64,000 nt of DNA from Dimorphilus gyrociliatus. Lineage: Eukaryota; Animalia; Annelida. Location of the stretch: positions 930,001 to 994,000 of the forward strand of contig CAJFCJ010000008.1 in assembly GCA_904063045.1 (NCBI GenBank), written 5' to 3'. Below the pieces are notes generated by a model that saw nothing but the letters and a program-made list of their open reading frames with translations, was not told where the DNA came from and made no database searches. Positions 1-64,000 of the stretch are shown here, piece after piece (within the stretch, counting starts at the first letter, position 1; the number at the start of each line of letters is the position of its first letter). The translations under genes and the position numbers were made by a program.

Positions 1-1087
1 ATTTACCAGTTGTCAGTTGCCAACGGTATATTTTACATTTTGAAAATTCGCGCCACAAATACAAAAAGATTCTTTTGAATAAAGTTTTCCTATTAATCAA
101 TATTAAACATGTTTAGAGTCGTACTTGATCTTCCTGAAAAAGAGAGAATAACACGATAAATATATTTATATTGATATGAGTTATTTAATTATTGAGAGCT
201 GCAATGCTTTTATACCTTTCGCGGAGCAATTCAGGCAAAAAATAATAATTACCATAGTTGCTTTCCAGTGGATTCTTTGATGATAGCAGATTATAGTATG
301 AATTAACTGAATGGAAAATATTGAAGTGTTATGGAATATGGAATATGAAATATTGATCAAATAGAGAGATACAATAGTCAAAATAATATCTTTTAGACAC
401 TTAATATCTTAAATTCTTGTTTAAATTAGTTTTAAGACTCCTGAATGGCTGATTAAAGCTAATCCAGTATTATTTACAGTCTTGCAGTTACAGTATGAAA
501 TATCTACTTAAAAAACTGTTATTCATTCAAATAGTAGACTATAAACACAACAATTTTAGTATTTACTAACGTGTCTTACTCAAAATCCAAAAGATTTTCA
601 TAATTTGCCTTTCTATTTTCATCCAAATTTTCGACAGCTTAGCACAAACGTTTAAGTAAACTTTAAGCCGATAAGAGCTAGATTAAAGAACGTATACGTA
701 GCCGTCTAAACTTGCCCAAGTTCACACTGAGTTTTCTTCCTCTATTTTTTTTTTTAAAAAAAAAAGTATAAAATTTTTATTTGAGTGCAAAATTTCTTTT
801 ATTGTTTTATAGTAAAAAGATAAATATATATATATATAAGTTTCTATAGCAAATAAATTCTACTTTGGCCGACAGCACAAAAAAGGTGTAAAAAAAAACA
901 AAACAAAGGTAAAAAGGATAAACTCTTGATTATCAACACGCCAAAAAATTGATTTTCATTGAGCAGTCAGCTTTTTTCAACATTCTTTATATATCTTCAC
1001 TTCAGAATCCGATGGCATGCAGAGATAAGACTTTGGCTTTAAATTGTTTATAATTAATTAATTAATTAATCAATCTAATTAATTTAA

Positions 1088-6141: not shown

Positions 6142-7965
6142 CATTACATTTTATTTTATTATAAATTTTCAAAAGCACCTGCCTCTTTCCCCCCTTCCGG
6201 AATTTTTAACTACAAGTGCTTGTACTTGAAACTACAAGGCTTTTCTTTTGTCTTACTTTGTTAAACATTTAAAAAAATTCAATATTCATTTTAAAAAATG
6301 AAAAAGATAATAAATTCGCTCTTTTTTCTCTTTCTAAAGAAAAGTCTGTTTTTAGCGGACCAACTGTCATTTTTACTTATTAAATTCAGATTTACGGTCA
6401 GTGGATACGAAAAGGCGGGTCGGAAGGAGGTCATAATGAGACTTTTTATTAAATCGATGAGTTATAATTATAACCACAATATATGTGATTAACGCCTAAA
6501 TATAAGTTTACGACTTAATATATTGTGCAAGTTTATATAGGTGTGCAGTCAACTTATTCTTTATGAAAGAAAAAGGAGAATCGAATTTAGGTGAAAAATA
6601 GGCATTCCGTTCCATACGAAAACGTCTTTAATAAAGTTTATTATGTTATTCTTAACGATTTTCTTGAATTCGTTAAACATTCTCATATGACAAAACAGCT
6701 TTGGGCGCTGTCAATCAGCGGACCACCCACTACCGATACTATTAAAACATTTAACATCTTCTTAATGGCAATTTCAATGTCACTGTCGCTGTATTATTTT
6801 AACCAATTTCAACTTATTTTGCTTGGCTTGCTGTGTGACGAGTGTATGACGTGATGCTCCTTTTTATTTTCGTGACGTCATGTTGACGAAGAGAATTAGT
6901 ATGGTTAAATTGGAATTTTGAAAGGAATTTCGGCCCATTTCTTTTTACCCCGCCCATCGAGCCGGCTAGGCCTAATTTGGCACACGCAAGATTCCCGAAT
7001 TTGGCGGGTAAAGTGATAAATTCTTTAGGAAATGTCCAATGAAAAAAATGCCCTAAGGGCTTGAAATTTAAGGAGACATCATACTCCTTTTTACAGTCGT
7101 AACTACCGGGGGAAATAGGGAATCGTTTAAACAGCTCAATACAAAGTCGACTGACCACAACTGACCATGGGAAGATTTAAATTGACACTGCGCTGACATC
7201 TTTGTGACGTTCAATTAGAGCATTAAACGGCTACCGCCGATATTCTAGAAGAGAGCATTTCTAATGTAAATCTAAACATAATAATGAGAATAAGACTAGA
7301 TATAATTTTTAATTCGTTTATTTATTCGTACGCATGTAATTGAAAGCCGAAGAGAACATAGAGCTTTTGTCTGCGATCATGGATGGTAAATAAATGAAAA
7401 AGATGTGAATTCACTTAACCCCCTTTCATCCGCCGCCATTTAAACAGGCTTGTAAAGAGATTTGTGTATATTTAGATATTTGTAAAGAATATTTGTCAAT
7501 GAATTGTTCATCTCCTTATTATCGGATTTTTAACAATATATAAATATATTTTCCTTATCTATATACATATATGTTTACAAGTACAAAATATACATTTATG
7601 GAATTTTTCTGTATATCATTATATGAATAAATTAAGTTTATTCTTATTAACTTTTAACATAGTTTCATAATTACAGAATATATTTAAATATGTATTTATA
7701 AATATATATATATATATATATATAGATATATATATATATATACATGTATGTATACTATATATATATATATATATATACTTCCGCATGTATACACATATAA
7801 TTCTTGTTTTAATAAATATAGACTCATAAACATGCATACATGAAGAAAATTCTTAATTCTCTCTCTTTTTAGTAAGAACGTAAGTCTATACGCTTAAACT
7901 TTTTATTGCAAAATGGAAAAAAAAAACGAATAATTGCAGAACAAAACGCTAAATTGTTATTCAAC

Positions 7966-32400: not shown

Positions 32401-34376
32401 AAGAAAAGAAAGAGAAGTCTGTAGAAGAGAGAAGTGAAGAAACATCTAAAGAGAAGCCAACAGAAGAAAAACCTTCAAATACCCCCGCTGCAGACACCTC
32501 TTTAGCAACCTTATTTAAAAAAACTGACGTTTGGAGGTGTCCCAGTTGTGACATTGAAAATAAAAATGACGTTACAAGCTGTGTTTGTTGTGGTGATTCT
32601 AAGCCGGGATCTAAAAATACTGACTCGAATTTGAAGAGTGATTCAGGGTTAAAATTTTCATTTCTTGAATCATCAAATAAGACTGATAACTCAAATACAC
32701 CCGCTAAATCTGCTTCTACACTGGTATTGAACGAAACTGGTGGTTTTAAATTTTCCGCTTCATTGCCATCTACTGAATCCTCATCATTGGAAACAAGCAA
32801 AAAACCAGAGGCTCCTGGTAAGTTTTGTCTCAAACCTTGTTTATGAATAAAGTTTGCATAATGATATTTTATCTAGCATCAAATGCCATCTCAACTGCGT
32901 TTGGTGAATCATCGGCAAAGAAATCTTCAAGCCCATTTGTTTTTGGTCAAACATCGACAGCCACTGCAACACCACCGACCTTTGTATTTGGTCAACAATC
33001 AACTAAGCCATCAGAGTCGTCTGGTATAGCCTTCGGCCAACCAATCACTTCTGTGTCAACATCAGCTTTTGGTCAGCCCTCATCCGCTACTACTTCCTCT
33101 TCTGTACCGTTTCTACAATCACCAATTTCAGCTGCAAGTTCCTCAACCTTTCAGTTTAATGTTGGTGGTTTGAAATCAACTAGTAGTTCCAGTAAGTTCA
33201 AAAGAATGACAATAAAGAATTCTACATATGATTTTACTAACAGGCCCAGCCTTAGCTACAATTTCAGCTACGTCCTCAGCTCCAAAGGTTACTTCAACTT
33301 TTTCTTTTGGAAAACCTCCAGCAGCCTCAACAAGTGAGTCCGAAATAAGTGGAGGAAAAAAAGTCGATTTATTTCAATTCACAGGTTCTGGAGATTCGTC
33401 AACTAAAAGTACATGTAAGTTGCAGTCTTTCTAAAATAAGCGTTGACTAATCTGAATTCCTGTAGCTGGATTTACATTTGGAAAGAGCCCAGCACCTGTA
33501 AATAGCTCAAGTACAACAAAGAGCGAGCCTTTTCAATTTAACACATTACCAACAAGTTCGCTGTCTTCAGGCCCATCATTTACTCCTCCCACCTTTGGTA
33601 CTCCCAAAGCAGGAGGATTTGAAGCCCCAAAATCAACAACTGCAAGCGGTAAAAGTTAATTTACTTCAGAGTTTATAATTTTTAAATGCCAACATTGATA
33701 GTTTCAGCATCTGCTCCATTTACATTTGGACAAACAACATCATTTGGTTCTGATTCAAATAAATTTGGAGGTTTTAATAAAGGTAAAAAGAATTATAAAA
33801 ATTTGCTCAACACTAATTCAATATTTGTCAGGAGCCACCACTTCGGCGTCATCGAACAGTTTTACATTCGGCTCACCAGCGACTTCCGCCTCAACATTTG
33901 GCGGTAGTAATAATCCACCTGCGAATCAGTTTAACTTTGGCGCGCAACAACCTTTAAATCAAAATAATGGAGGGGCAGGAGTTTTCCAATTTTCAGCTGT
34001 AAGTGCAACCTTAAGTTAAGTAAATTGTAAGACATTTTATTTTACTATTAGCAAACAAACAACGTTAATGGAGTGCAACAACCGTCGGCACCTAGCAACA
34101 ATCAAGGTTTCAACTTCCAAGCAGCCCCTTCTACCCCGAGTTTTAACTTTGGACAACAAGCTCCTCAAAATACATCAAACTTTCAATTTTCGTAAGTTTA
34201 AAAGTAACTACACTGAACTTTAATCTTATAAATATATTTTTTACAGTGGCAACGCCCCGCCATCAAATAATAATATGAATAATTTACCTTCGACACTGAA
34301 TCCGTTTAGTGCAAGTCCCTCAGTTGGTGGAAAACGACAAATTAAGAAAGCAACGAGAAAATTACCGAGAAAATAA
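29437..34376 (+). CDS. NUP153: Nucleoporin Nup153, multi-exon
   Basis: GKIRR..KPY N-terminus, FYPGNTTFGGA, STAKRILETLENMSSP, two RanBP2 zinc fingers (WNC..C, WRC..C), FG/FxFG repeats, basic tail KRQIKKATRK. Confidence 0.95.
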
Positions 34377-50432: not shown

Positions 50433-52106
50433 CTCTTTTTCGTTTAGTACTTGTACCAGTAGAAGGGATTTTTTTCATGGTAGATCGATATGAAATCAAT
50501 AATTTTCGGATTAAAAGTATCCGACAAGATGTTCGTATAAAAAAGATATAACTTAATCTTTTGTATAAATTTAAAATGCTCCTCTTTAGACGGTAAAATG
50601 AAGAGAACTATTATTTTCTTGTTCTTTTATTTTACCTTATATTTATCCTTTATCGAATTATATTCTTCTTCAATATTTAGGTCATCGACTTGCAATTGTT
50701 CAAAGTCTTTAATCAGAACGACCACCTGTATAGTAAAAAGAGAGAAAAAAAACAGCAAACGATTAGGCCTATTTAGCAGCAATTTGTAGGCTGGAAAAAA
50801 AGAATTAGGTTTTAAAATAAAGCGCCATCTAATGCGTAAAGTGATAAATAAAGTTTCTTTTTTTTTTTTTATTAGAAATGTTGACTAACTTGTTCGTATA
50901 GAATTATCCATTTCTGACGTTGTAAATTGTTTTGCAAGCTTTTGCGATTTGTGTCGCAAATATTCAGGAATTGTTTGTTATCTTCTCGTATTTTTGCATT
51001 ATAACTGAAAGAGAAACAAAAAATGTACAATGATATAAAATACTAATTAATATTAATAGTTGTTGCGATGAAAGAAGAAGAAGAAGAAGAAGAAAGGCTA
51101 CCTGTCTATATGATTAGAGATAATCGATAAATATGGTGGATTATCTTTACTTTTTTGTATATTTTTAACAAAATTAATTGAATTTCCATCCAATTTTTCA
51201 TATTTCATTTTAATTCTTTCAATAAACTGTTCAAAATCATTTAAACCTTTTTCAATAAAATCAGGATTTATAAGATTCAACCATTTTAGAACGAATTGTT
51301 GATAATTTTTAATTTCCTCTTCAATTTCCGAAATTTCTAATCGAATTTTATTCATAAACTGAATATTTTGAATACTTTTAACAATTTTATCAATAAAACG
51401 TTTATTATTAATTATTTTTTTTAATTATTTACCTTTAAACAATCAATCCAAATGTAGAAATCATATTTTATATTTCCTTTATACTCAATAGTTAAGTTTT
51501 CTTTACAAATGAACTTTTGTAATTGATCCGTATTGTCAAGTTTATGTATATTAATAGCATTTGATCTTTCTAAATTTGAATTTGATAACTTTTGAAAGAA
51601 TCCTATAGGTTTTATAATAAGAACCATATTGATTAATTCTGAATTTGTAATCTGAATTTATAGATAGATATATAGTTAAATAGACAAATAAAATATATAA
51701 ACATTATGGTTAACAATTTAAACCTACAATAGATTCTTTAATAAATTCCCTAACATGCGCCCATTTTGAATTTCTTCGGTCTAATACAATAGTAAATGTT
51801 TCAACATTGCAATTCTCAAAAGAGTATCTACGAGAAATGAATGACGATTGAAACAAAAAATAGAATCTAATATACATATTTATAAAATAACAATGATTTT
51901 ATAACTTACTTTAAAGTTGTTGTCATAAATTTTAACAAGTATTTAAATTCATTACGATTGATTATTTGCTTATTATCGGGGATAACAAGTATAGGTAAGC
52001 CATTTTTTGAAATACCACCGTATAGATAAGCGTACTTATTTGTCTTTAATTTTCTAAGGAAATCTCCATACTCCATCTCATTAATGGGACTTTTAACAGT
52101 TGCCAT
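46767..52106 (-). CDS. Divergent Dbl-family RhoGEF (CRAL-TRIO/SEC14 - spectrin-like - DH - PH; MCF2L/puratrophin-like)
   Basis: GGISKNGLPILVIP, FTIVLDRRNSKW, LIIKP..F (SEC14-like). ELIESEKKYV..NIFSNWEELLEFH (DH). RTVFLFHNALIF (PH). At least 11 exons joined in frame by hand. Confidence 0.85.
49647..49976 (-). CDS. Alternative first exon (110 codons) of the RhoGEF
   Basis: ATG-started ORF ending at TTG|GTGAGT in phase 0, compatible with the phase-0 acceptor at 48984. No good acceptor seen upstream of the ATG. Confidence 0.7.
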
Positions 52107-53496
52107 TTTATTCTATTATCCAATTAAGAAATCATGTGACTATTAAAAAAAATATCGTAATTTATTGACAATGGACTGATAAGAGAAATTATTAGAAGAG
52201 TTTATATAAGAGATAAATGTATAAAAAGATACAAAATACAGAAATATATTTATATATTCATACCTTTTCTTCTTAACGCCATTTTATTTTCATAATAGTT
52301 AACTTCCTGTGAATATTAACAATTTTTCACATAATATAATTTAAACAAGCATATGTTAAATCTATAATAATCTGGAAATTTTTGCACGTAAACAGTTTTT
52401 TTTCTCTCTTTTTCTAAAGTTGTTATTGATTTATAGCATCAGCTGACTTTTTTTTTTTGTTATTTAGTAAAAGATAAAAATCATTATTTTATAAAGATAA
52501 ATATATATTACTATTTACTCATCTTTTTCTGTTTTTATAGTTATGTTTTATGTATTATATGTATGTATTTATGTGTGTATATATGCTTTACGGCGAGTAG
52601 GTAGAGCTGTGGGGTCGGGTGAGGGGGAAATACACCAAGAATGGTGTTGATTTTTTTTATTTATATAAAAAAAAACAACAACAACAACCCTAGAATAAAA
52701 AATGTAGTTTTTTTTCAAAATTGTACTCTTTAACTAGTCGATATAGTTATATTATTTCTTTTTAATAATTAAATAGTTATAATAATTAATAATTACTTTT
52801 AGAACATGTAAAGTTTTAATAAAAATCATTCAAACCTTCTTATTTCTTTCCAGAATAGATAGTTGTAATATACTACTTATGGCCTCTAAAATACAGATAT
52901 TTTTTTATTTTATTTTCTCTGTTTGCATATTCTTTACTAAGGTTCTTAGGCCTATTGGATATTTAAGAAAAGAAACAAGTATTGAAATAACTAATTATTG
53001 TTAAGTGAGTATTTCAAAAATGATGTAATTGTATGTAGGGTTTTGTTGGAGGGGGAAAAAAACTAGTATTGTTATTTATTAACATATCATTTAGTTGTTA
53101 TAGGCGAAATATATATATATATATATATATATTCATATTATATCTACTAGTCTGACTCTATTGCTCTCAATACTCACTTGCAAGCGCATGTTTGGTTGAC
53201 GTGGACTGGATGTACTATTTAACCTCTTACTTTCCTTTTAGTTGACGTGTTTAATCGACAGCTAGAAAATTTTATTTAAGCGGCAGAAAATATGTAATGG
53301 TACACTGACAGCTATCAATACCATATCGGGTTTATTTTTATAGTATATGTATTATAATATAGAGTCAATGAACTCATGCTCTGCTTAACAATTTGCTACC
53401 TTTTCTTCATCTCGTTTTTATATTCCCAATAGCAAAACACATACATTATATCTAACAACAGTTTGACACTTTCCTTGTTATTTTATCTCTGATACA

Positions 53497-53698
53497 ATGG
53501 GTAAGCTTTAAACTTTCTAGAAGGGAAACTTAACATCAGCGATTTGTCAATTTTTTTCTATTTTCTTAATAACTAGATGGCGCCTTTGCGAAGAAAACCT
53601 TACAAAAGGTGTTGGATCAAGCCGTACACAGGATTTTTTCAGTGCTGTACAAGGATTCGAGTATAAAAAAGAAGATGGAAAAGAAGAAGAAAAATTAA
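53497..53698 (+). CDS. Candidate spliced smORF, 41 aa (MDGAFAKKTLQKVLDQAVHRIFSVLYKDSSIKKKMEKKKKN)
   Basis: ATGG|GTAAGC donor at 53501, pyrimidine tract and TAG acceptor at 53576 (76-nt intron), open frame to TAA at 53696-53698. Confidence 0.45.
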
Positions 53699-55270
53699 GA
53701 AAGTAGACAACTCAGTAGAAGAGAAGAAAGAAGATGAGATACACGATATTCTTTACTTATCAATGTAAATTTTGAAAATATTAATTAGATAATTAGAAGA
53801 GTAGACAAATTAATGACATCCTTTAAACGTTTGCTCAAAGAGATTAAAATACTTCTCTTCTATTTATCATCTATCAAAAAATTCCTAACTTTAATTATAA
53901 TTCAGAAAGAGATAAGAAGAAGAAGTGAAGAAAAGATAAATGTAGTTTATGAAATAGAGAACAGGAAAAAGGAAAAGAAAGATGTATAGAAAGGAATTTT
54001 TGTCTCATTATATATAATAATTAATATAGTATTAATCAATTTTGTCCTTTTCCTTTTCACATTATTCTCAATTCTCATCAACATAAGCAAAATTAATGTA
54101 GAAACTACAACGGAACATATGTATATTTCTATATATAGTAATTGGTAAAAATTTCATCTGCAAAGGTATTGGGAAACAGCTTTCCCAATATATTTTTACC
54201 CAAAACATCATTTATATTTTGTAAATACGTTCTGTTTTCAATATCTGGCTTAAAAAAAAAAGATAAAAAGTAAGACAGTTTTATCCATGCTAAAAATCAT
54301 AATAGTATAGGCCTAAATTATATATATATATATATATATGTTTATGATAACTCTCTAAAGAACACAATAATGAAGAAGTTTTTATATTTTTAGAAAAATT
54401 TTCTTTTCAATTTTGCTTATTGAAACTGTAAACAACTGCAAAAAAACGTTATTTAATATTTTTTCCAGTTTTATTACTTACTCTCTCTCTCTCTCCACTT
54501 CTCTTCTACCTCTCTACCTCCTTCTCCCCCTTGCCCCCTCTCCATTTCTCTCTCTCTTTTTTTTTCTCTTACCATCCACCCAACCTTCAATTCAATTTAT
54601 TAAAATTTCATTTACTTTTACATTGTTAGTGTCACTTCCTTACAATCAACCAATTAACTATATGTTTAGGTAAAAGAAAAATAAGGCCTAAGTGTTCCAT
54701 TTATAGTTTCGAAATAAACTTCATTCATAATACTTTGTGATAGTATGGATTTTTAAGATGCTTTGCTGTTTAAACCTTCATAGTATAAAAAGTAGAATCG
54801 CTATTTTTGTTGCATTTTAAAGGAAATGAAAGACATTTTTTCTTTCTATTCATAAGGATAAATTATGCTTGTAAAGATATAGATAAATAATATTTGTATA
54901 TAATAATCGTTGTTGGTACAGAGTATCACCACGTATCAGAATAATAAAAGAAATGAACTATTCACCATTGATAGGACCGGTATCCATAACACTCTTACTT
55001 TAAAAGGTCAAACGGGATGTCTTCCTGACCTTATATTGTTTTTTTCTTTAAATGGTAAAGAAGAGACGCTGACTGTGAAATCGTTTGAGACGAGGTCGTT
55101 TCGGTTGGGGGAAAAAAGTGGGAATAAAAAAGTAAAAACTGGGTATAGTTCGATGATAAACTGTTGTAACGGCTGTTTTTACTTGAGTCTACGCCACTTT
55201 TCATTTCATTTCTGGCGGTCGTTTGCTACGTAAGTGCACATTATTTAGAGAAGCATCAATAATTTTCTTT

Positions 55271-55358
55271 TACTGGCGGATGTTCACGTTAACCGTCATT
55301 CTGCTGCCTTAAATTTAAATGGCAGCAATGGCGGATAGCATGGAGATCCGTTTCAGTA
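55271..55358 (+). ncRNA. Candidate pri-miRNA hairpin A (88 nt)
   Basis: Hand pairing gives 33 bp including G-U, three single mismatches, two 2-nt bulges and a 12-nt loop. No match to the conserved miRNA families I recall. Confidence 0.55.
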
Positions 55359-55427
55359 ACTTTGCTTTACTAACATTCTTCCTATAACGACTTTGAGAAA
55401 AGAAAATACCGGAAATGAAGATATAAA

Positions 55428-55513
55428 GGGGGTGGATGACTTCTCTTGATCAATATGGCAACAAAATACTTGTTCGTTTGCTGTCATATTTATCAAATAC
55501 AGTTCCACTTTCC
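55428..55513 (+). ncRNA. Candidate pri-miRNA hairpin B (about 86 nt)
   Basis: Hand pairing gives about 30 bp, two mismatches, one 4x4 internal loop, a 2-nt bulge and an 11-nt loop. Confidence 0.45.
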
Positions 55514-56066
55514 AAGAGCATCTTTATATTTTTTTGTCTTATGAACTGTTTTATTCTCATCTAAAAATATACTTATTGCATATCAGCATATCATTTATAA
55601 ACCTATATAGATCTGTAAAAAAGCAAATTCTGTGGCGCCACTTCGACGACAACGCCATCTGCATATTTTAACGAATATATCGTCTGCTAAGTATCTGCGA
55701 TTTATTTGTTCAGAGCTGGCTATTGACTTTATATCGTTTTTGAAAATCGGACAGTTTAGGTTCAATTAAGGTAAAATACTACTTTATTAGTTATTTAACA
55801 TAAATAATATCTTGAGATAGTATTTTGCTAAAAAGGTAGAATTATGTTAATAGTGAAATGGTGTCACGTGTTTATCAAAAATAGAGAGAAATATGTATAA
55901 TAGCCAATTGGACGTAGATCGAATCTGGATCTTGTATCGAGTTCTATCCACTATTAATCTTCGAAAAAAAGGCTATTGTCAATTGCACTAGAAATCATTT
56001 AAACAACCTATTCAATCCTCTTTCTCAAACAGATATTATAACAACTGTAACTATTGAATAGACCGA

Positions 56067-57160
56067 ATGGAAGAGAATAACAATGAAAACAGAATTAACC
56101 TTGATGCCCCAAGATGGGATCAGTCCTCTTTTAGTGGAAGAGCAAAACATTTTTTCTCTATAACTAACCCTTTAAATCTTTTCGCTTCTCACGATGAACT
56201 AGAAAAAGCAAAGGAGCTTGTTAAGCTCTACAAGTCCAGAAAAGAACCACCTGGTGTCACTGCAGATCAAGTTTGGAAAGCTAAATGGCTTTACGATTCG
56301 GCTTTTCATCCTGACACCGGAGAGAAAATGTTTCTACCAGGAAGAATGTCTGCTCAAGTACCTTTTAATATGGCAATAACTGGATTTATGCTGACTTTCT
56401 ATAAAACTGCACCAGCTGTCATTTTCTGGCAATGGAGTAATCAGACATTTAACGCAGTTGTTAACTATACTAACTCTAATAAAAGTTCGGGAGAGAATGA
56501 CTCCGAACAAATGAAACAACTAGGAAAATCTTATATGATTGCCACGGGTTCGGCAACTGTGACCGCCCTGGCTTTAAATCAGATTATACACAAATTTCCA
56601 GCAATTTTGGCCAGATTCGTACCTTTGGTGGCCGTAGCAGCGGCCAATTGCTTGAATATCCCATTCATGAGAAGTCAAGAACTTGTTAAAGGAATAACGG
56701 TGTTTTCAAAGGATGGTGAAAAGGTCGGAGAATCAAAAAAAGCAGCTAAGAGTGCTATTTCTCAAGTGGTATTTTCGAGAATAGTAATGTCTTGTCCCAG
56801 CATGATTTTATCCCCACTCCTAATGGCTCGTTTAGAGAAAGGAAACCTGTTGAAGGTACATTCAATTTAATTCATAATAAGTTGTTTACTCGTAACTTTT
56901 TATTGAAAACTTAGAAATATCCTCGCCTGAGTGCTCCTATTCAGATTATTTTCGTAGGATTTTTGTAAGTATTAATAAAGTAATGTTGGATAATCCTTAT
57001 AAAGAACCTCTTTCTTAACAGATTGTCTTTTGCAACGCCTTTATGTTGTGCCATATTCCCTCAAAAGAGTTCTATGACAGTGTCTAAGATGGAAGGTGAT
57101 ATTAAGGAAAAGGCAGAAAAAATGGGATTGACCAAAGTCTATTTTAACAAAGGATTATAG
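56067..57160 (+). CDS. SFXN1: Sideroflexin (SFXN1/3 type), 3 coding exons
   Basis: PRWDQSSFSGRAKHF, HPDTGEK, GRMSAQVP, WQWSNQTFNAVVNYTN, VAVAAANCLNIPFMR, terminal YFNKGL*. SFXN1 versus SFXN3 not resolvable. Confidence 0.95.
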
Positions 57161-57329: not shown

Positions 57330-58810
57330 TTAACTTGCAATAAGCATTTCATGAGTTTTTTGACCAGTCTTTGACATCTCTGGTTTCGCTGGTTCAAATT
57401 TCGGAACTTCAGGCATATCTGCAAAAGTGAGAGCAAAGATATTATTTTGATAAAATTGAAAAGTAAATTTCTAACCAGATATGATATCGCAAACATTTTC
57501 ATCTGCTAAAATTTTATCCAATTCGTCCTGTAGTTCTTGCTGATCGATCATATCGTTATGTGAAACATTTACAATCGACCTATTTAAATCGTCTTGAACG
57601 TCGATTGCATCGTTAATTTCGTCAACGACGTCATCTACTTGATTGACAGATAGCGAATTCTTTTTTAATGCAGAGCTTGCAGACTTCATTGCTTCATAAA
57701 CTTCAGCATTGTTCCTACTCTGAGCGATTTTCTCCAGCGTTACATGAAAGTTATCTAATTGATTCTCTAATTGGATTTTTGATGCTTCTAATCTCTTTTT
57801 ACGACGTAGACATTGTTTCGCTGAAGTGTGCTGTTTCTGATTGAGATATATTTTTGCTTGAGTTCGACATTCTTCCATTTGATCTTCTTTCTTTCTTATG
57901 GCATTTTCCAATTTATTACACATTTGTTCTAATCTGAACCATATAGTTTTTAAGTAATATTATCTCTTTTTTATGAAGATGCAATATACAGTATATGACA
58001 ATTAAACTTACCGAAATTTATCTAATTCCTCTGGATTAAAATCAAATAATCTCTCGTTTTCTTCTTTGGCAAATTTAACAAACTAAAATTAAATGTTTTA
58101 ACATATTAAGAGTATGTATCAAATAGTTACAATTATAACTCTAACCTTGCCAAGTTGTGGATCTTTTATCATAATGGCGTGACCTTGGTATTGAAGAGCT
58201 AAGATAACCAGTTCCAATGATTTATCATCACAGACATCTGACATTAGTAAGATGATATCTTGCCATGGAACAATATTACTGCCTTCATTCGGCCGGTTAC
58301 TATAATATCTAGTTAATAACTCTTTAGAAGAGCTCTGTAAGAGAACCAAAATTCAGGTCAAGTTAGCCATTTGCTAATTAGTCAAACCTCTATCAAATTT
58401 AAGTGTACATATTCAGAATCAACTTCAGGCTTTTTTGTACCCCAGACCTTATTAAACGTCCATGCTACAGGCTTATGAACTAACATATTCCAACTCCACT
58501 TTATCCATCCTGTTCTCTGACAATTTCTTCTAAAGTCTTGAACAGTTAAAACTTGTTGATTTTCGTACAAATGCTGTATAACATCCTGCAAACACGCAGG
58601 TATAAGACTTTTACGCAAGAATTGTCGAGCTAATGTCTTCGGTTGAAATTTAAAATTTTTATGGTGACTTAGATGGCTCTCGATTAATTTTATCCAAAAC
58701 TTCAATTTAGCATCATATGATTCTGGATTAAGGCTTCTTCGTTTAAAAGGAGCAAAAAGAAAATTCATACGACTCTCATCTTCCCATTCTGGTGGTAAGT
58801 AATTAGCCAT
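57330..58810 (-). CDS. CHMP7: Charged multivesicular body protein 7
   Basis: LPPEWEDESRMNFLFAPFKR..NPESYDAKLKFW N-terminus, winged-helix region, then Snf7 domain (AKQCLRRKKRLE, ELQDELDKI). Last exon ends at TAA 57330-57332. Confidence 0.95.
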
Positions 58811-62635: not shown

Positions 62636-64000
62636 ATGGCTAGCTTAGGAAAAGCCGGAGGTTTAGTGAGAATCCTGACAGGTTAGCGCACTACTTCTAT
62701 GCACGATATGATTACAAACTGTGACGCTAAAGTAATACTTTGAATACTGTTTTTGACCTTCGAAAACTACGTTTACAACATTGATTGTTTGAAATAATTT
62801 TTTGATATAATAGTCTTGCTAAAATCACTTCACAACTGTTTTTCAGGAAGTCTACCAAAATCTTCACCTGTTTTGACTTCTGTTCGATTTAATCAAACCG
62901 ATGCAAAGAAAGAAAAGGTAAATAATTTTAAATAAATCGGCTAAATAATAGATAATCATAATTGCTTACTATAGACCACCTTCGGCAACCTTAAAGATGA
63001 GGATAGAATTTTTACAAATCTTTATGGAAGACATGATTGGAGATTAAAAGGTGCAAAGTCCAGGGTAAGCAAACATTTTAATTAGAATTAACCTTTTTTA
63101 CTGATAATGATGTATTGTTTAATTTTTCAGGGCGACTGGTACAAAACAAGAGAAATTATGGACAAGGGAATTGAGTGGATCCAAAAAGAAATCACTACGT
63201 CTGGCCTAAGAGGAAGAGGAGGTGCCGGTTTCCCAACTGGAATGAAATGGAGTTTTATGAATCGTCCCGACGATGGAAGGTAATTCAGGATTTTCAATAA
63301 GAATTTAACTAGGCTTGCTATCAATAATTATTGAACGTGTTTTCTTAGGCCAAAATACTTAGTAGTGAATGCTGATGAAGGAGAACCAGGAACATGTAAA
63401 GATAGGGAAATAATGAGACATGATCCACATAAACTTATAGAAGGCTGTCTTATTGCTGGCAAAGCAATGGGAGCTAGAGCAGGTTGGTTAAGGAAATAAT
63501 GCTTTTACAATCCATAATTGTTTACGCATTCTAGCATATATTTATATTCGTGGCGAGTTCTATTATGAGGCATCGAACATGAATGCCGCAATTAAAGAGG
63601 CTTATGACGCTGGTCTCATCGGTAAAAATGCTTGTAATTCGGGCTATGACTTTGATGTTTACATGCATCGTGGAGCTGGAGCTTATATTTGTGGTGAAGA
63701 AACCGCCCTCATTGAGTCTTTAGAGGGAAAGCAAGGCAAGCCCCGTCTTAAGCCCCCCTTCCCTGCTGACGTCGGCGTTTTCGGTTGTCCTACCACTGTG
63801 AACAACGTTGAAACCATAGCTGTTGCTCCAACTATTTGCAGAAGAGGTGGAGAGTGGTTTGCTCAGTTTGGAAGGGATAGAAATAGGGGAACTAAGCTTT
63901 TTAATATATCTGGTCATGTGAATAATCCTTGTACCGTAGAAGAAGAAATGAGCGTACCTTTGAAAGACCTTATTGAAAGGCATGCTGGAGGAGTTAGAGG
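62636..64000 (+). CDS. NDUFV1: NADH dehydrogenase flavoprotein 1 (51 kDa), 5' part, runs off the window
   Basis: [72 protein letters not shown]. Confidence 0.98.

Follow-up and report, generated by a model that had tools for sequence, protein, structure and literature searches.

We found that two adjacent hairpins, B and C, in the miniature annelid Dimorphilus gyrociliatus are real and statistically exceptional structures, and that selection keeps both their sequence and their pairing at two loci of the genome. The reading that we prefer, with a probability of roughly 0.6, is that they are neighbouring microRNA precursors of a small polycistronic cluster on the plus strand, and that they belong to a lineage-restricted family with one older duplicate cluster on another contig (C20). 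A first-pass annotation of the region had proposed a lineage-specific microRNA cluster, or another structured RNA, made of three long fold-backs (A, B, and C). The microRNA proposal is supported for B and C, which present the shape of Drosha substrates, z-scores at or above those of control microRNAs, an occurrence at two loci and conserved arms; it is not supported for A. The coordinates of all three fold-backs proved accurate and are given in Table 1 with those of the other features. By the window we refer to the whole 64-kb stretch of DNA that was analysed, which belongs to contig C8.

Table 1. Features at the C8 locus and their counterparts on C20. Positions without a contig name are those of the window.
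Feature	Position	Strand	Observation
Window (D. gyrociliatus, 78-Mb assembly)	G000:C8:930001-994000		
Hairpin A, weak inverted repeat outside the feature	55107-55207	.	z-score −1.79
Hairpin pair B-C at C8	55271-55513 (C8:985271-985513)	+	
Hairpin B, candidate pri-miRNA stem-loop	55271-55358	+	12-nt loop at 55309-55320
Predicted B-5p arm	55284-55305	+	two differences from the C20 copy (positions 1 and 13)
Predicted B-3p arm	55324-55345	+	21 of 22 positions identical to the C20 copy, entire seed included
Hairpin C, candidate pri-miRNA stem-loop	55428-55513	+	11-nt loop at 55466-55476
Predicted C-5p arm	55442-55463	+	positions 1-11 identical to the C20 copy; 12 and 20 differ
Predicted C-3p arm	55481-55502	+	one seed difference from the C20 copy (position 6)
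Putative SFXN 5'-UTR intron (would hold B and C)	55230-56032	+	GTAAGT...CAG motifs only
SFXN (sideroflexin), first coding exon	56067-56870	+	ORF with read-through at its end; Pfam PF03820
B paralogue	G000:C20:1124023-1124115		upper arms 47/48 and loop 7/12 identical
C paralogue	G000:C20:1124156-1124245		upper arms 44/54 and loop 2/13 identical

The pair lies in 4 kb of AT-rich intergenic sequence (28% GC), with a minus-strand gene starting at position 52106 on one side and the plus-strand SFXN gene on the other. The hairpin region had been described as relatively GC-rich, which is correct but mild: its GC-content is 37%, where the window as a whole has 32% and the intergenic stretch has 28%. 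The ORFs across the hairpin region yielded no match to any Pfam family. The first coding exon of SFXN matches the D. gyrociliatus sideroflexin DgyrCDS7017 with 99% identity, and the exon of a related species (P0003), carried by a 15.7-kb Logan contig, is 81% identical. Dimorphilus gyrociliatus is a model of genome compaction and has one of the two shortest genomes of MirGeneDB 3.0.

We folded each fold-back on both strands and compared it with 200 dinucleotide shuffles apiece. Hairpin B reaches −44.1 kcal/mol on the plus strand, relative to a shuffle mean of −20.4 kcal/mol (z-score −7.36; none of the 200 shuffles folded as well). It is paired from its first to its last base, with 38-nt arms and about 33 bp, and its stem is interrupted by three single mismatches and one 2-nt bulge per arm. 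When folds of 90 nt were computed along the 64 kb and on both strands, B ranked first of 12,782 (−44.9 kcal/mol; the runner-up was at −37.5 and the 0.1 percentile at −29.5 kcal/mol). Hairpin C, which contains about 30 bp and also has 38-nt arms, folds at −25.8 kcal/mol (z-score −4.59), again with 0 of 200 shuffles as good, and it falls within the top 1% of the 90-nt folds of the window. The stems of roughly 30 to 35 bp and the loops longer than 10 nt that had been claimed for two of the hairpins were recovered in B and C; both combine a stem of about 35 bp and a loop of at least 8 nt with a single-stranded basal junction.

To calibrate these values we used conserved microRNAs that D. gyrociliatus itself encodes, namely let-7 and mir-124, each at two loci, and mir-1. 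Their presence indicates that the microRNA pathway exists in this species. Four of these five loci were folded with their flanks included and yielded energies of −30.6 to −38.5 kcal/mol (z-scores of −3.7 to −5.4). Relative to these controls, B lies above the range and C equals them by z-score, although its energy of −25.8 kcal/mol is weaker than that of any control.

Hairpin A reaches neither level. B, C, and both of their C20 copies fold clearly better than their shuffles; A folds at −21.4 kcal/mol with 10 of 200 shuffles as good, and its z-score is −1.05 when it is placed in a context of 146 nt. Its structure is broken by two large internal loops and is irregular towards the top, and its two strands are nearly equal (−21.4 kcal/mol on the plus strand and −20.4 kcal/mol on the minus strand). 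We observed no counterpart of A upstream of B on C20, where the folds present z-scores of +0.6 and +0.1, and no sequence shared with that locus. On these grounds A was rejected as a third member of the cluster. AT-rich DNA yields many weak fold-backs, and A is one of them.

A DNA search of the whole assembly identified one further B-C pair (G000:C20:1124041-1124201), with order and orientation unchanged. Both C20 copies keep the stem and loop geometry of the C8 copies and each folds as a single hairpin: B at −40.5 kcal/mol (z-score −6.57; −37.1 kcal/mol on the minus strand) and C at −26.8 kcal/mol (z-score −6.08; −24.6 kcal/mol on the minus strand). Covariance models, one per hairpin and each built from its two copies, matched at C8 and C20 only. 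With up to three mismatches allowed, the 3' arm of B (24 nt) was recovered at the same two loci only, and the 5' arm of C (22 nt) yielded these loci plus one chance match with three mismatches on contig C35, which was rejected as a third copy since it is without a homologous hairpin. Neither arm returned a match in scans of metagenomes. A sensitive BLAST comparison of positions 52100-56100 with 10 kb around the C20 site revealed the segment from B to C alone in common, and neither shared flanks nor terminal duplications were seen between the two loci. An occurrence at two loci only excludes a dispersed repeat: the many dispersed copies with target-site duplications that would have marked a MITE-like element were not recovered by BLAST, covariance model, or pattern search. 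An element of that kind, or an introner-like repeat with hairpin ends, is rejected both by a copy number of two and by conservation that is proximal to the loop and not at the termini.

The two copies of each hairpin are unevenly conserved. This comparison relies on two sequences per hairpin, which are paralogues rather than orthologues from different species. The upper arms are identical at 47 of 48 positions in B and 44 of 54 in C, relative to 7 of 12 and 2 of 13 positions, respectively, for the loops. The lower stems have diverged in sequence (6 of 19 positions identical in B and 8 of 18 in C) but pairing is kept. The spacer between B and C is identical at 28 of 69 positions and differs in length (69 nt at C8 and 52 nt on C20), and the outer flanks are about 25-40% identical. 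RNAalifold identified two fully compensatory pairs in B, where these changes re-pair the lower stem, and two in C, with six additional one-sided changes that keep the pair in the latter. Several exchanges of G-U for A-U or G-C were also found, and one G-U pair per hairpin is kept in both copies. Uniform neutral decay is unable to leave arms 98% identical beside saturated loops, which indicates that both copies have been selected for arm sequence and for pairing. Conservation of the arms over loops and flanks is the usual profile of a microRNA gene; here arms and seeds exceed loops and flanks in a comparison of two paralogous loci only.

We then placed the predicted arms by rule on the folded structures, some 13 bp away from the basal junction and some 22 bp away from the apical one. 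The predicted duplex of B has 18 of 22 positions paired and that of C, which carries a 4×4 internal loop at its base, has 18-19 (both counted by hand); at least 16 are expected of a microRNA duplex. The arm comparisons (Table 1) suggest that B-3p is likely the guide strand of B and that C-5p is likely the guide strand of C, C-3p being less conserved than C-5p. A CNNC motif begins 17 nt downstream of the predicted C-3p arm. Overall, CNNC was found within the interval of 16-18 nt past the predicted 3p cut, namely at +16 or +17, in three of the four hairpins when read on the plus strand and in none of the four on the minus strand (background of 0.031 per position). These offsets hang on predicted cut sites, and their support for the plus strand is therefore modest. 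Relative to the same predicted sites, the basal UG is absent at −14 (one is present at −15) and no apical UGU occurs in the loops.

Could the hairpins be hosted by introns of their neighbouring genes? At C8, the first-pass annotation had combined a donor (AC/GTAAGT at 55230) with an acceptor AG (56031-56032) into an intron in the 5'-UTR of SFXN. Both motifs are present, the CAG acceptor-like site being 35 nt ahead of the start codon, but GTAAGT occurs 23 times on the plus strand of the window and the motif alone therefore carries little weight. The annotation had assigned A and B to this intron; its own coordinates would instead enclose B and C. Such an intron, at 803 nt, would be 12 times as long as the median intron of this species (66 bp; PMC7854359). 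The model of an SFXN 5'-UTR intron is, at present, a guess at the level of motifs.

On C20, the pair lies between a gene for a GPN-type GTPase and the mismatch-repair gene MSH2, both on the minus strand. For SFXN as for MSH2, the searches used single exons. An MSH2 exon that ends in NFPERVLE aligns to residues 819-849 of human MSH2, and it ends at a GT that lies just 7 nt away from the base of this copy of hairpin C. Two putative MSH2 exons were recognized by eye about 700 nt further along the minus strand; searched singly, these two returned no significant match. From this arrangement we infer that the C20 pair lies antisense within a putative MSH2 intron of 704 nt. The two loci are without a common host gene, and residence in an SFXN intron is therefore not a trait of the family.

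The strand from which the hairpins would be read deserves particular attention. All three fold-backs had been described as more stable on the plus strand. This is clear for B at C8 (−44.1 relative to −31.4 kcal/mol on the minus strand), narrow for C (an advantage of just 1.6 kcal/mol) and not clear for A. The advantage of the plus strand extends to the C20 copies (12.7 kcal/mol for B at C8 and 3.4 at C20; 1.6 for C at C8 and 2.2 at C20). In the basal stem of C at C8, three G-U pairs correspond to A-C mismatches on the minus strand. G-U pairs, folding energies, and predicted CNNC offsets thus favour the plus strand.

The main alternative keeps B and C as microRNA precursors and has them read from the minus strand or from both strands, such that the C20 pair would be sense-intronic in a long MSH2 intron and the C8 pair would be an upstream antisense unit. 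We consider this reading unlikely, although several observations are consistent with it. The minus-strand folds are significant (at C8, −31.4 kcal/mol and z-score −5.06 for B, and −24.2 kcal/mol and z-score −5.01 for C; at C20, −37.1 and −24.6 kcal/mol), the C20 pair adjoins the exon aligned to human MSH2 residues 819-849 and is apparently enclosed by an intron of some 704 nt (median intron of the species, 66 bp), and the lone U-to-C substitution in the arms of the C20 copy of B gives better pairing on the minus strand. However, all four hairpins energetically favour the plus strand, B at C8 by as much as 12.7 kcal/mol, and the minus strand loses the three G-U pairs in the basal stem of C at C8 as A-C mismatches. 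In addition, three of the four hairpins present CNNC at its expected offset when read on the plus strand and none of the four does so on the minus strand, and the terminal MSH2 exons that would close the intron past the hairpins were read by eye and are without significant match.

We searched both loci against known RNA families (Rfam 15, cmscan with E-values up to 10) and no family reached its gathering threshold; this check returned sub-threshold and inconsistent matches only. The best match of B at C8 was mir-4446 (RF03251; 33 bits for a threshold of 79), and that of B at C20 was mir-4433 on the other strand (26.9 bits for a threshold of 77). These are two different primate-specific families and none was common to both copies of B. 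Membership of B in mir-4446 was rejected, its score being far below 79 and its 82-nt alignment reflecting a generic hairpin shape. Dimorphilus is annotated in MirGeneDB 3.0 from the genome only, starting from MirMachine predictions and with no small-RNA reads (PMC11701709), so that a lineage-specific family would probably be missing from current catalogues. No small-RNA work is reported in the genome paper of D. gyrociliatus, and searching published text for the sequences of arm fragments returned no microRNA paper. It should be noted that B or C may be a diverged member of an annelid family.

The same data bear on a second alternative, according to which B and C are conserved structured RNA or DNA elements and not substrates of Drosha and Dicer (e.g., cis-regulatory stem-loops, protein-binding palindromes, or substrates of other dsRNA pathways). 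The observed selection on arms and pairing is consistent with such elements, as is the lack of a match to a known microRNA family and of the basal UG and apical UGU motifs. This explanation is nevertheless improbable: stem length, loop size, tandem layout, and conservation of arms over loops all resemble pri-miRNAs, the G-U pairs, together with the compensatory changes, speak for an RNA rather than a DNA element, and C8 and C20 share no host gene or gene position. Specific candidates of this kind were also rejected. Three were excluded on anatomy alone: H/ACA snoRNAs, which would need an H box and a 3' ACA as well as internal pockets, whereas the spacer here varies between 69 and 52 nt; iron-responsive elements, which require a CAGUGN loop; and transcription-factor palindromes, for which the 24-nt arms are too long.

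A further scenario would have the two clusters read in opposite directions, each in the sense of its host (C8 on the plus strand with the putative SFXN 5'-UTR intron, and C20 on the minus strand with the putative MSH2 intron), such that one ancestral pair would have given rise to two different guide sets. In another version, transcription of the C20 cluster would run antisense across the 3' end of MSH2 and the cluster would regulate this gene in cis. We give little credence to either version. Finally, it is very unlikely that the hairpins are without function, as remnants of a small mobile element with inverted repeats or of an intron with hairpin ends, or as chance palindromes that a segmental duplication has copied, since, even though weak fold-backs such as A are frequent in AT-rich DNA, there are two copies only, the conserved part is the loop-proximal upper stem and not the ends, no shared flanks or terminal duplications were seen, and a neutral duplicate would present even divergence instead of arms 98% identical beside loops and spacer at 15-58%.

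Under the preferred reading of a plus-strand microRNA cluster, we propose the following processing, arm choice, strand, and host transcript. A Pol II transcript would run over positions 55271-55513, either as SFXN pre-mRNA (within its first intron) or as an independent non-coding transcript. The Microprocessor would crop each stem of about 35 bp some 13 bp above its base, Dicer would take off the loop, and guides of about 22 nt would be loaded into Argonaute. The guides would most likely be B-3p (55324-55345) and C-5p (55442-55463), both of which have an unchanged seed in the C20 copy, and they would repress mRNAs with matches to these seeds.

The lineage-specific microRNAs of D. gyrociliatus appear to be uncharted, and this two-locus candidate family constitutes a concrete target for a first small-RNA experiment. 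Our results suggest that this worm keeps new microRNAs, and the long non-coding stretches that come with them, in a streamlined genome. The kind of gene is an ordinary one, and the gain is therefore in annotation and not in concept.

These hairpins can be compared with three known systems. In Drosophila, mir-iab-4 and mir-iab-8 are sense and antisense microRNA loci. As in that system, both strands of B and C fold significantly and the sense hosts would be on opposite strands, but here the folding energies and the CNNC motifs at their predicted offsets favour one strand only. Compared with the intronic microRNAs of long introns, the C20 pair differs in that its favoured strand is antisense to its host, and the two hosts are unrelated with the C8 intron being putative. 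The likeness is that the C8 pair lies between a donor-like GTAAGT and a CAG acceptor-like site, that the C20 pair is apparently contained in a 704-nt MSH2 intron, and that both putative host introns exceed 10 times the median intron length. The third comparison is with the canonical bilaterian pri-miRNA clusters of MirGeneDB, which are polycistronic and processed by Drosha/DGCR8 and Dicer. Although the present pair is known from the genome alone, belongs to no Rfam 15 family, and is devoid of the UG and UGU motifs, it shares with these clusters imperfect stems of about 35 bp, loops of 11-12 nt, two hairpins within 250 nt, z-scores near those of let-7, mir-1, and mir-124, a CNNC motif 16-18 nt past the predicted 3p cut in three of four hairpins, and arms that are kept while the loops are free to change.

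The second genomic copy of the hairpin pair B and C, in the same order and orientation, lies antisense to MSH2 on contig C20. One MSH2 exon at this locus matches residues 819–849 of the human protein; its donor site and the base of hairpin C are only 7 nt apart, and an intron of ~704 nt appears to enclose the pair. This apparent intron is more than 10 times as long as the median intron of the species.

Features located in the window and elsewhere in the assembly (G000; L002 and L004 are stretches of C20)
Feature	Location	Strand	Remarks
Long, nearly perfect AT-only palindrome	window 7681-7800	both	GC 7-14%
Single hairpin, rank 2 in window	window 33545-33645	-	-38.8 kcal/mol, z -4.6
CHMP7-like gene	window 57471-58810	-	Snf7 domain, PF03357
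NDUFV1-like ORF	window 63107-63283	+	judged by eye
Paralogous B+C pair	G000:C20:1124023-1124245 (L002:1483-1705; L004:8023-8245)	antisense to MSH2
let-7	G000:C2:1227293-1227372
let-7	G000:C24:1041236-1041307
mir-124	G000:C25:1062298-1062366
mir-124	G000:C12:1636059-1636133

Among the other fold-backs of the window, the second-ranked hairpin is much less stable on the + strand (-21.2 kcal/mol) than on the - strand, where it lies antisense within an FG-repeat-rich, apparently nucleoporin-like gene of the + strand. The palindrome folds at about -33 kcal/mol on either strand; it is regarded as low-complexity sequence rather than a candidate for a structured RNA.

SFXN and the CHMP7-like gene are convergent neighbors, and the ORF further downstream resembles, by eye, the gene of NADH dehydrogenase flavoprotein 1 (NDUFV1). 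In a related species, an SFXN exon 81% identical to that of the window was found (Logan; P0003, on a genomic-size contig of 15.7 kb; also P0002).

The let-7 matches score 47.8 and 45.8 bits, both slightly below the Rfam cut-off of 53.5 bits; both loci nevertheless fold into good hairpins and contain the let-7 guide sequence. The compact genome of D. gyrociliatus presents two loci each for let-7 and mir-124.
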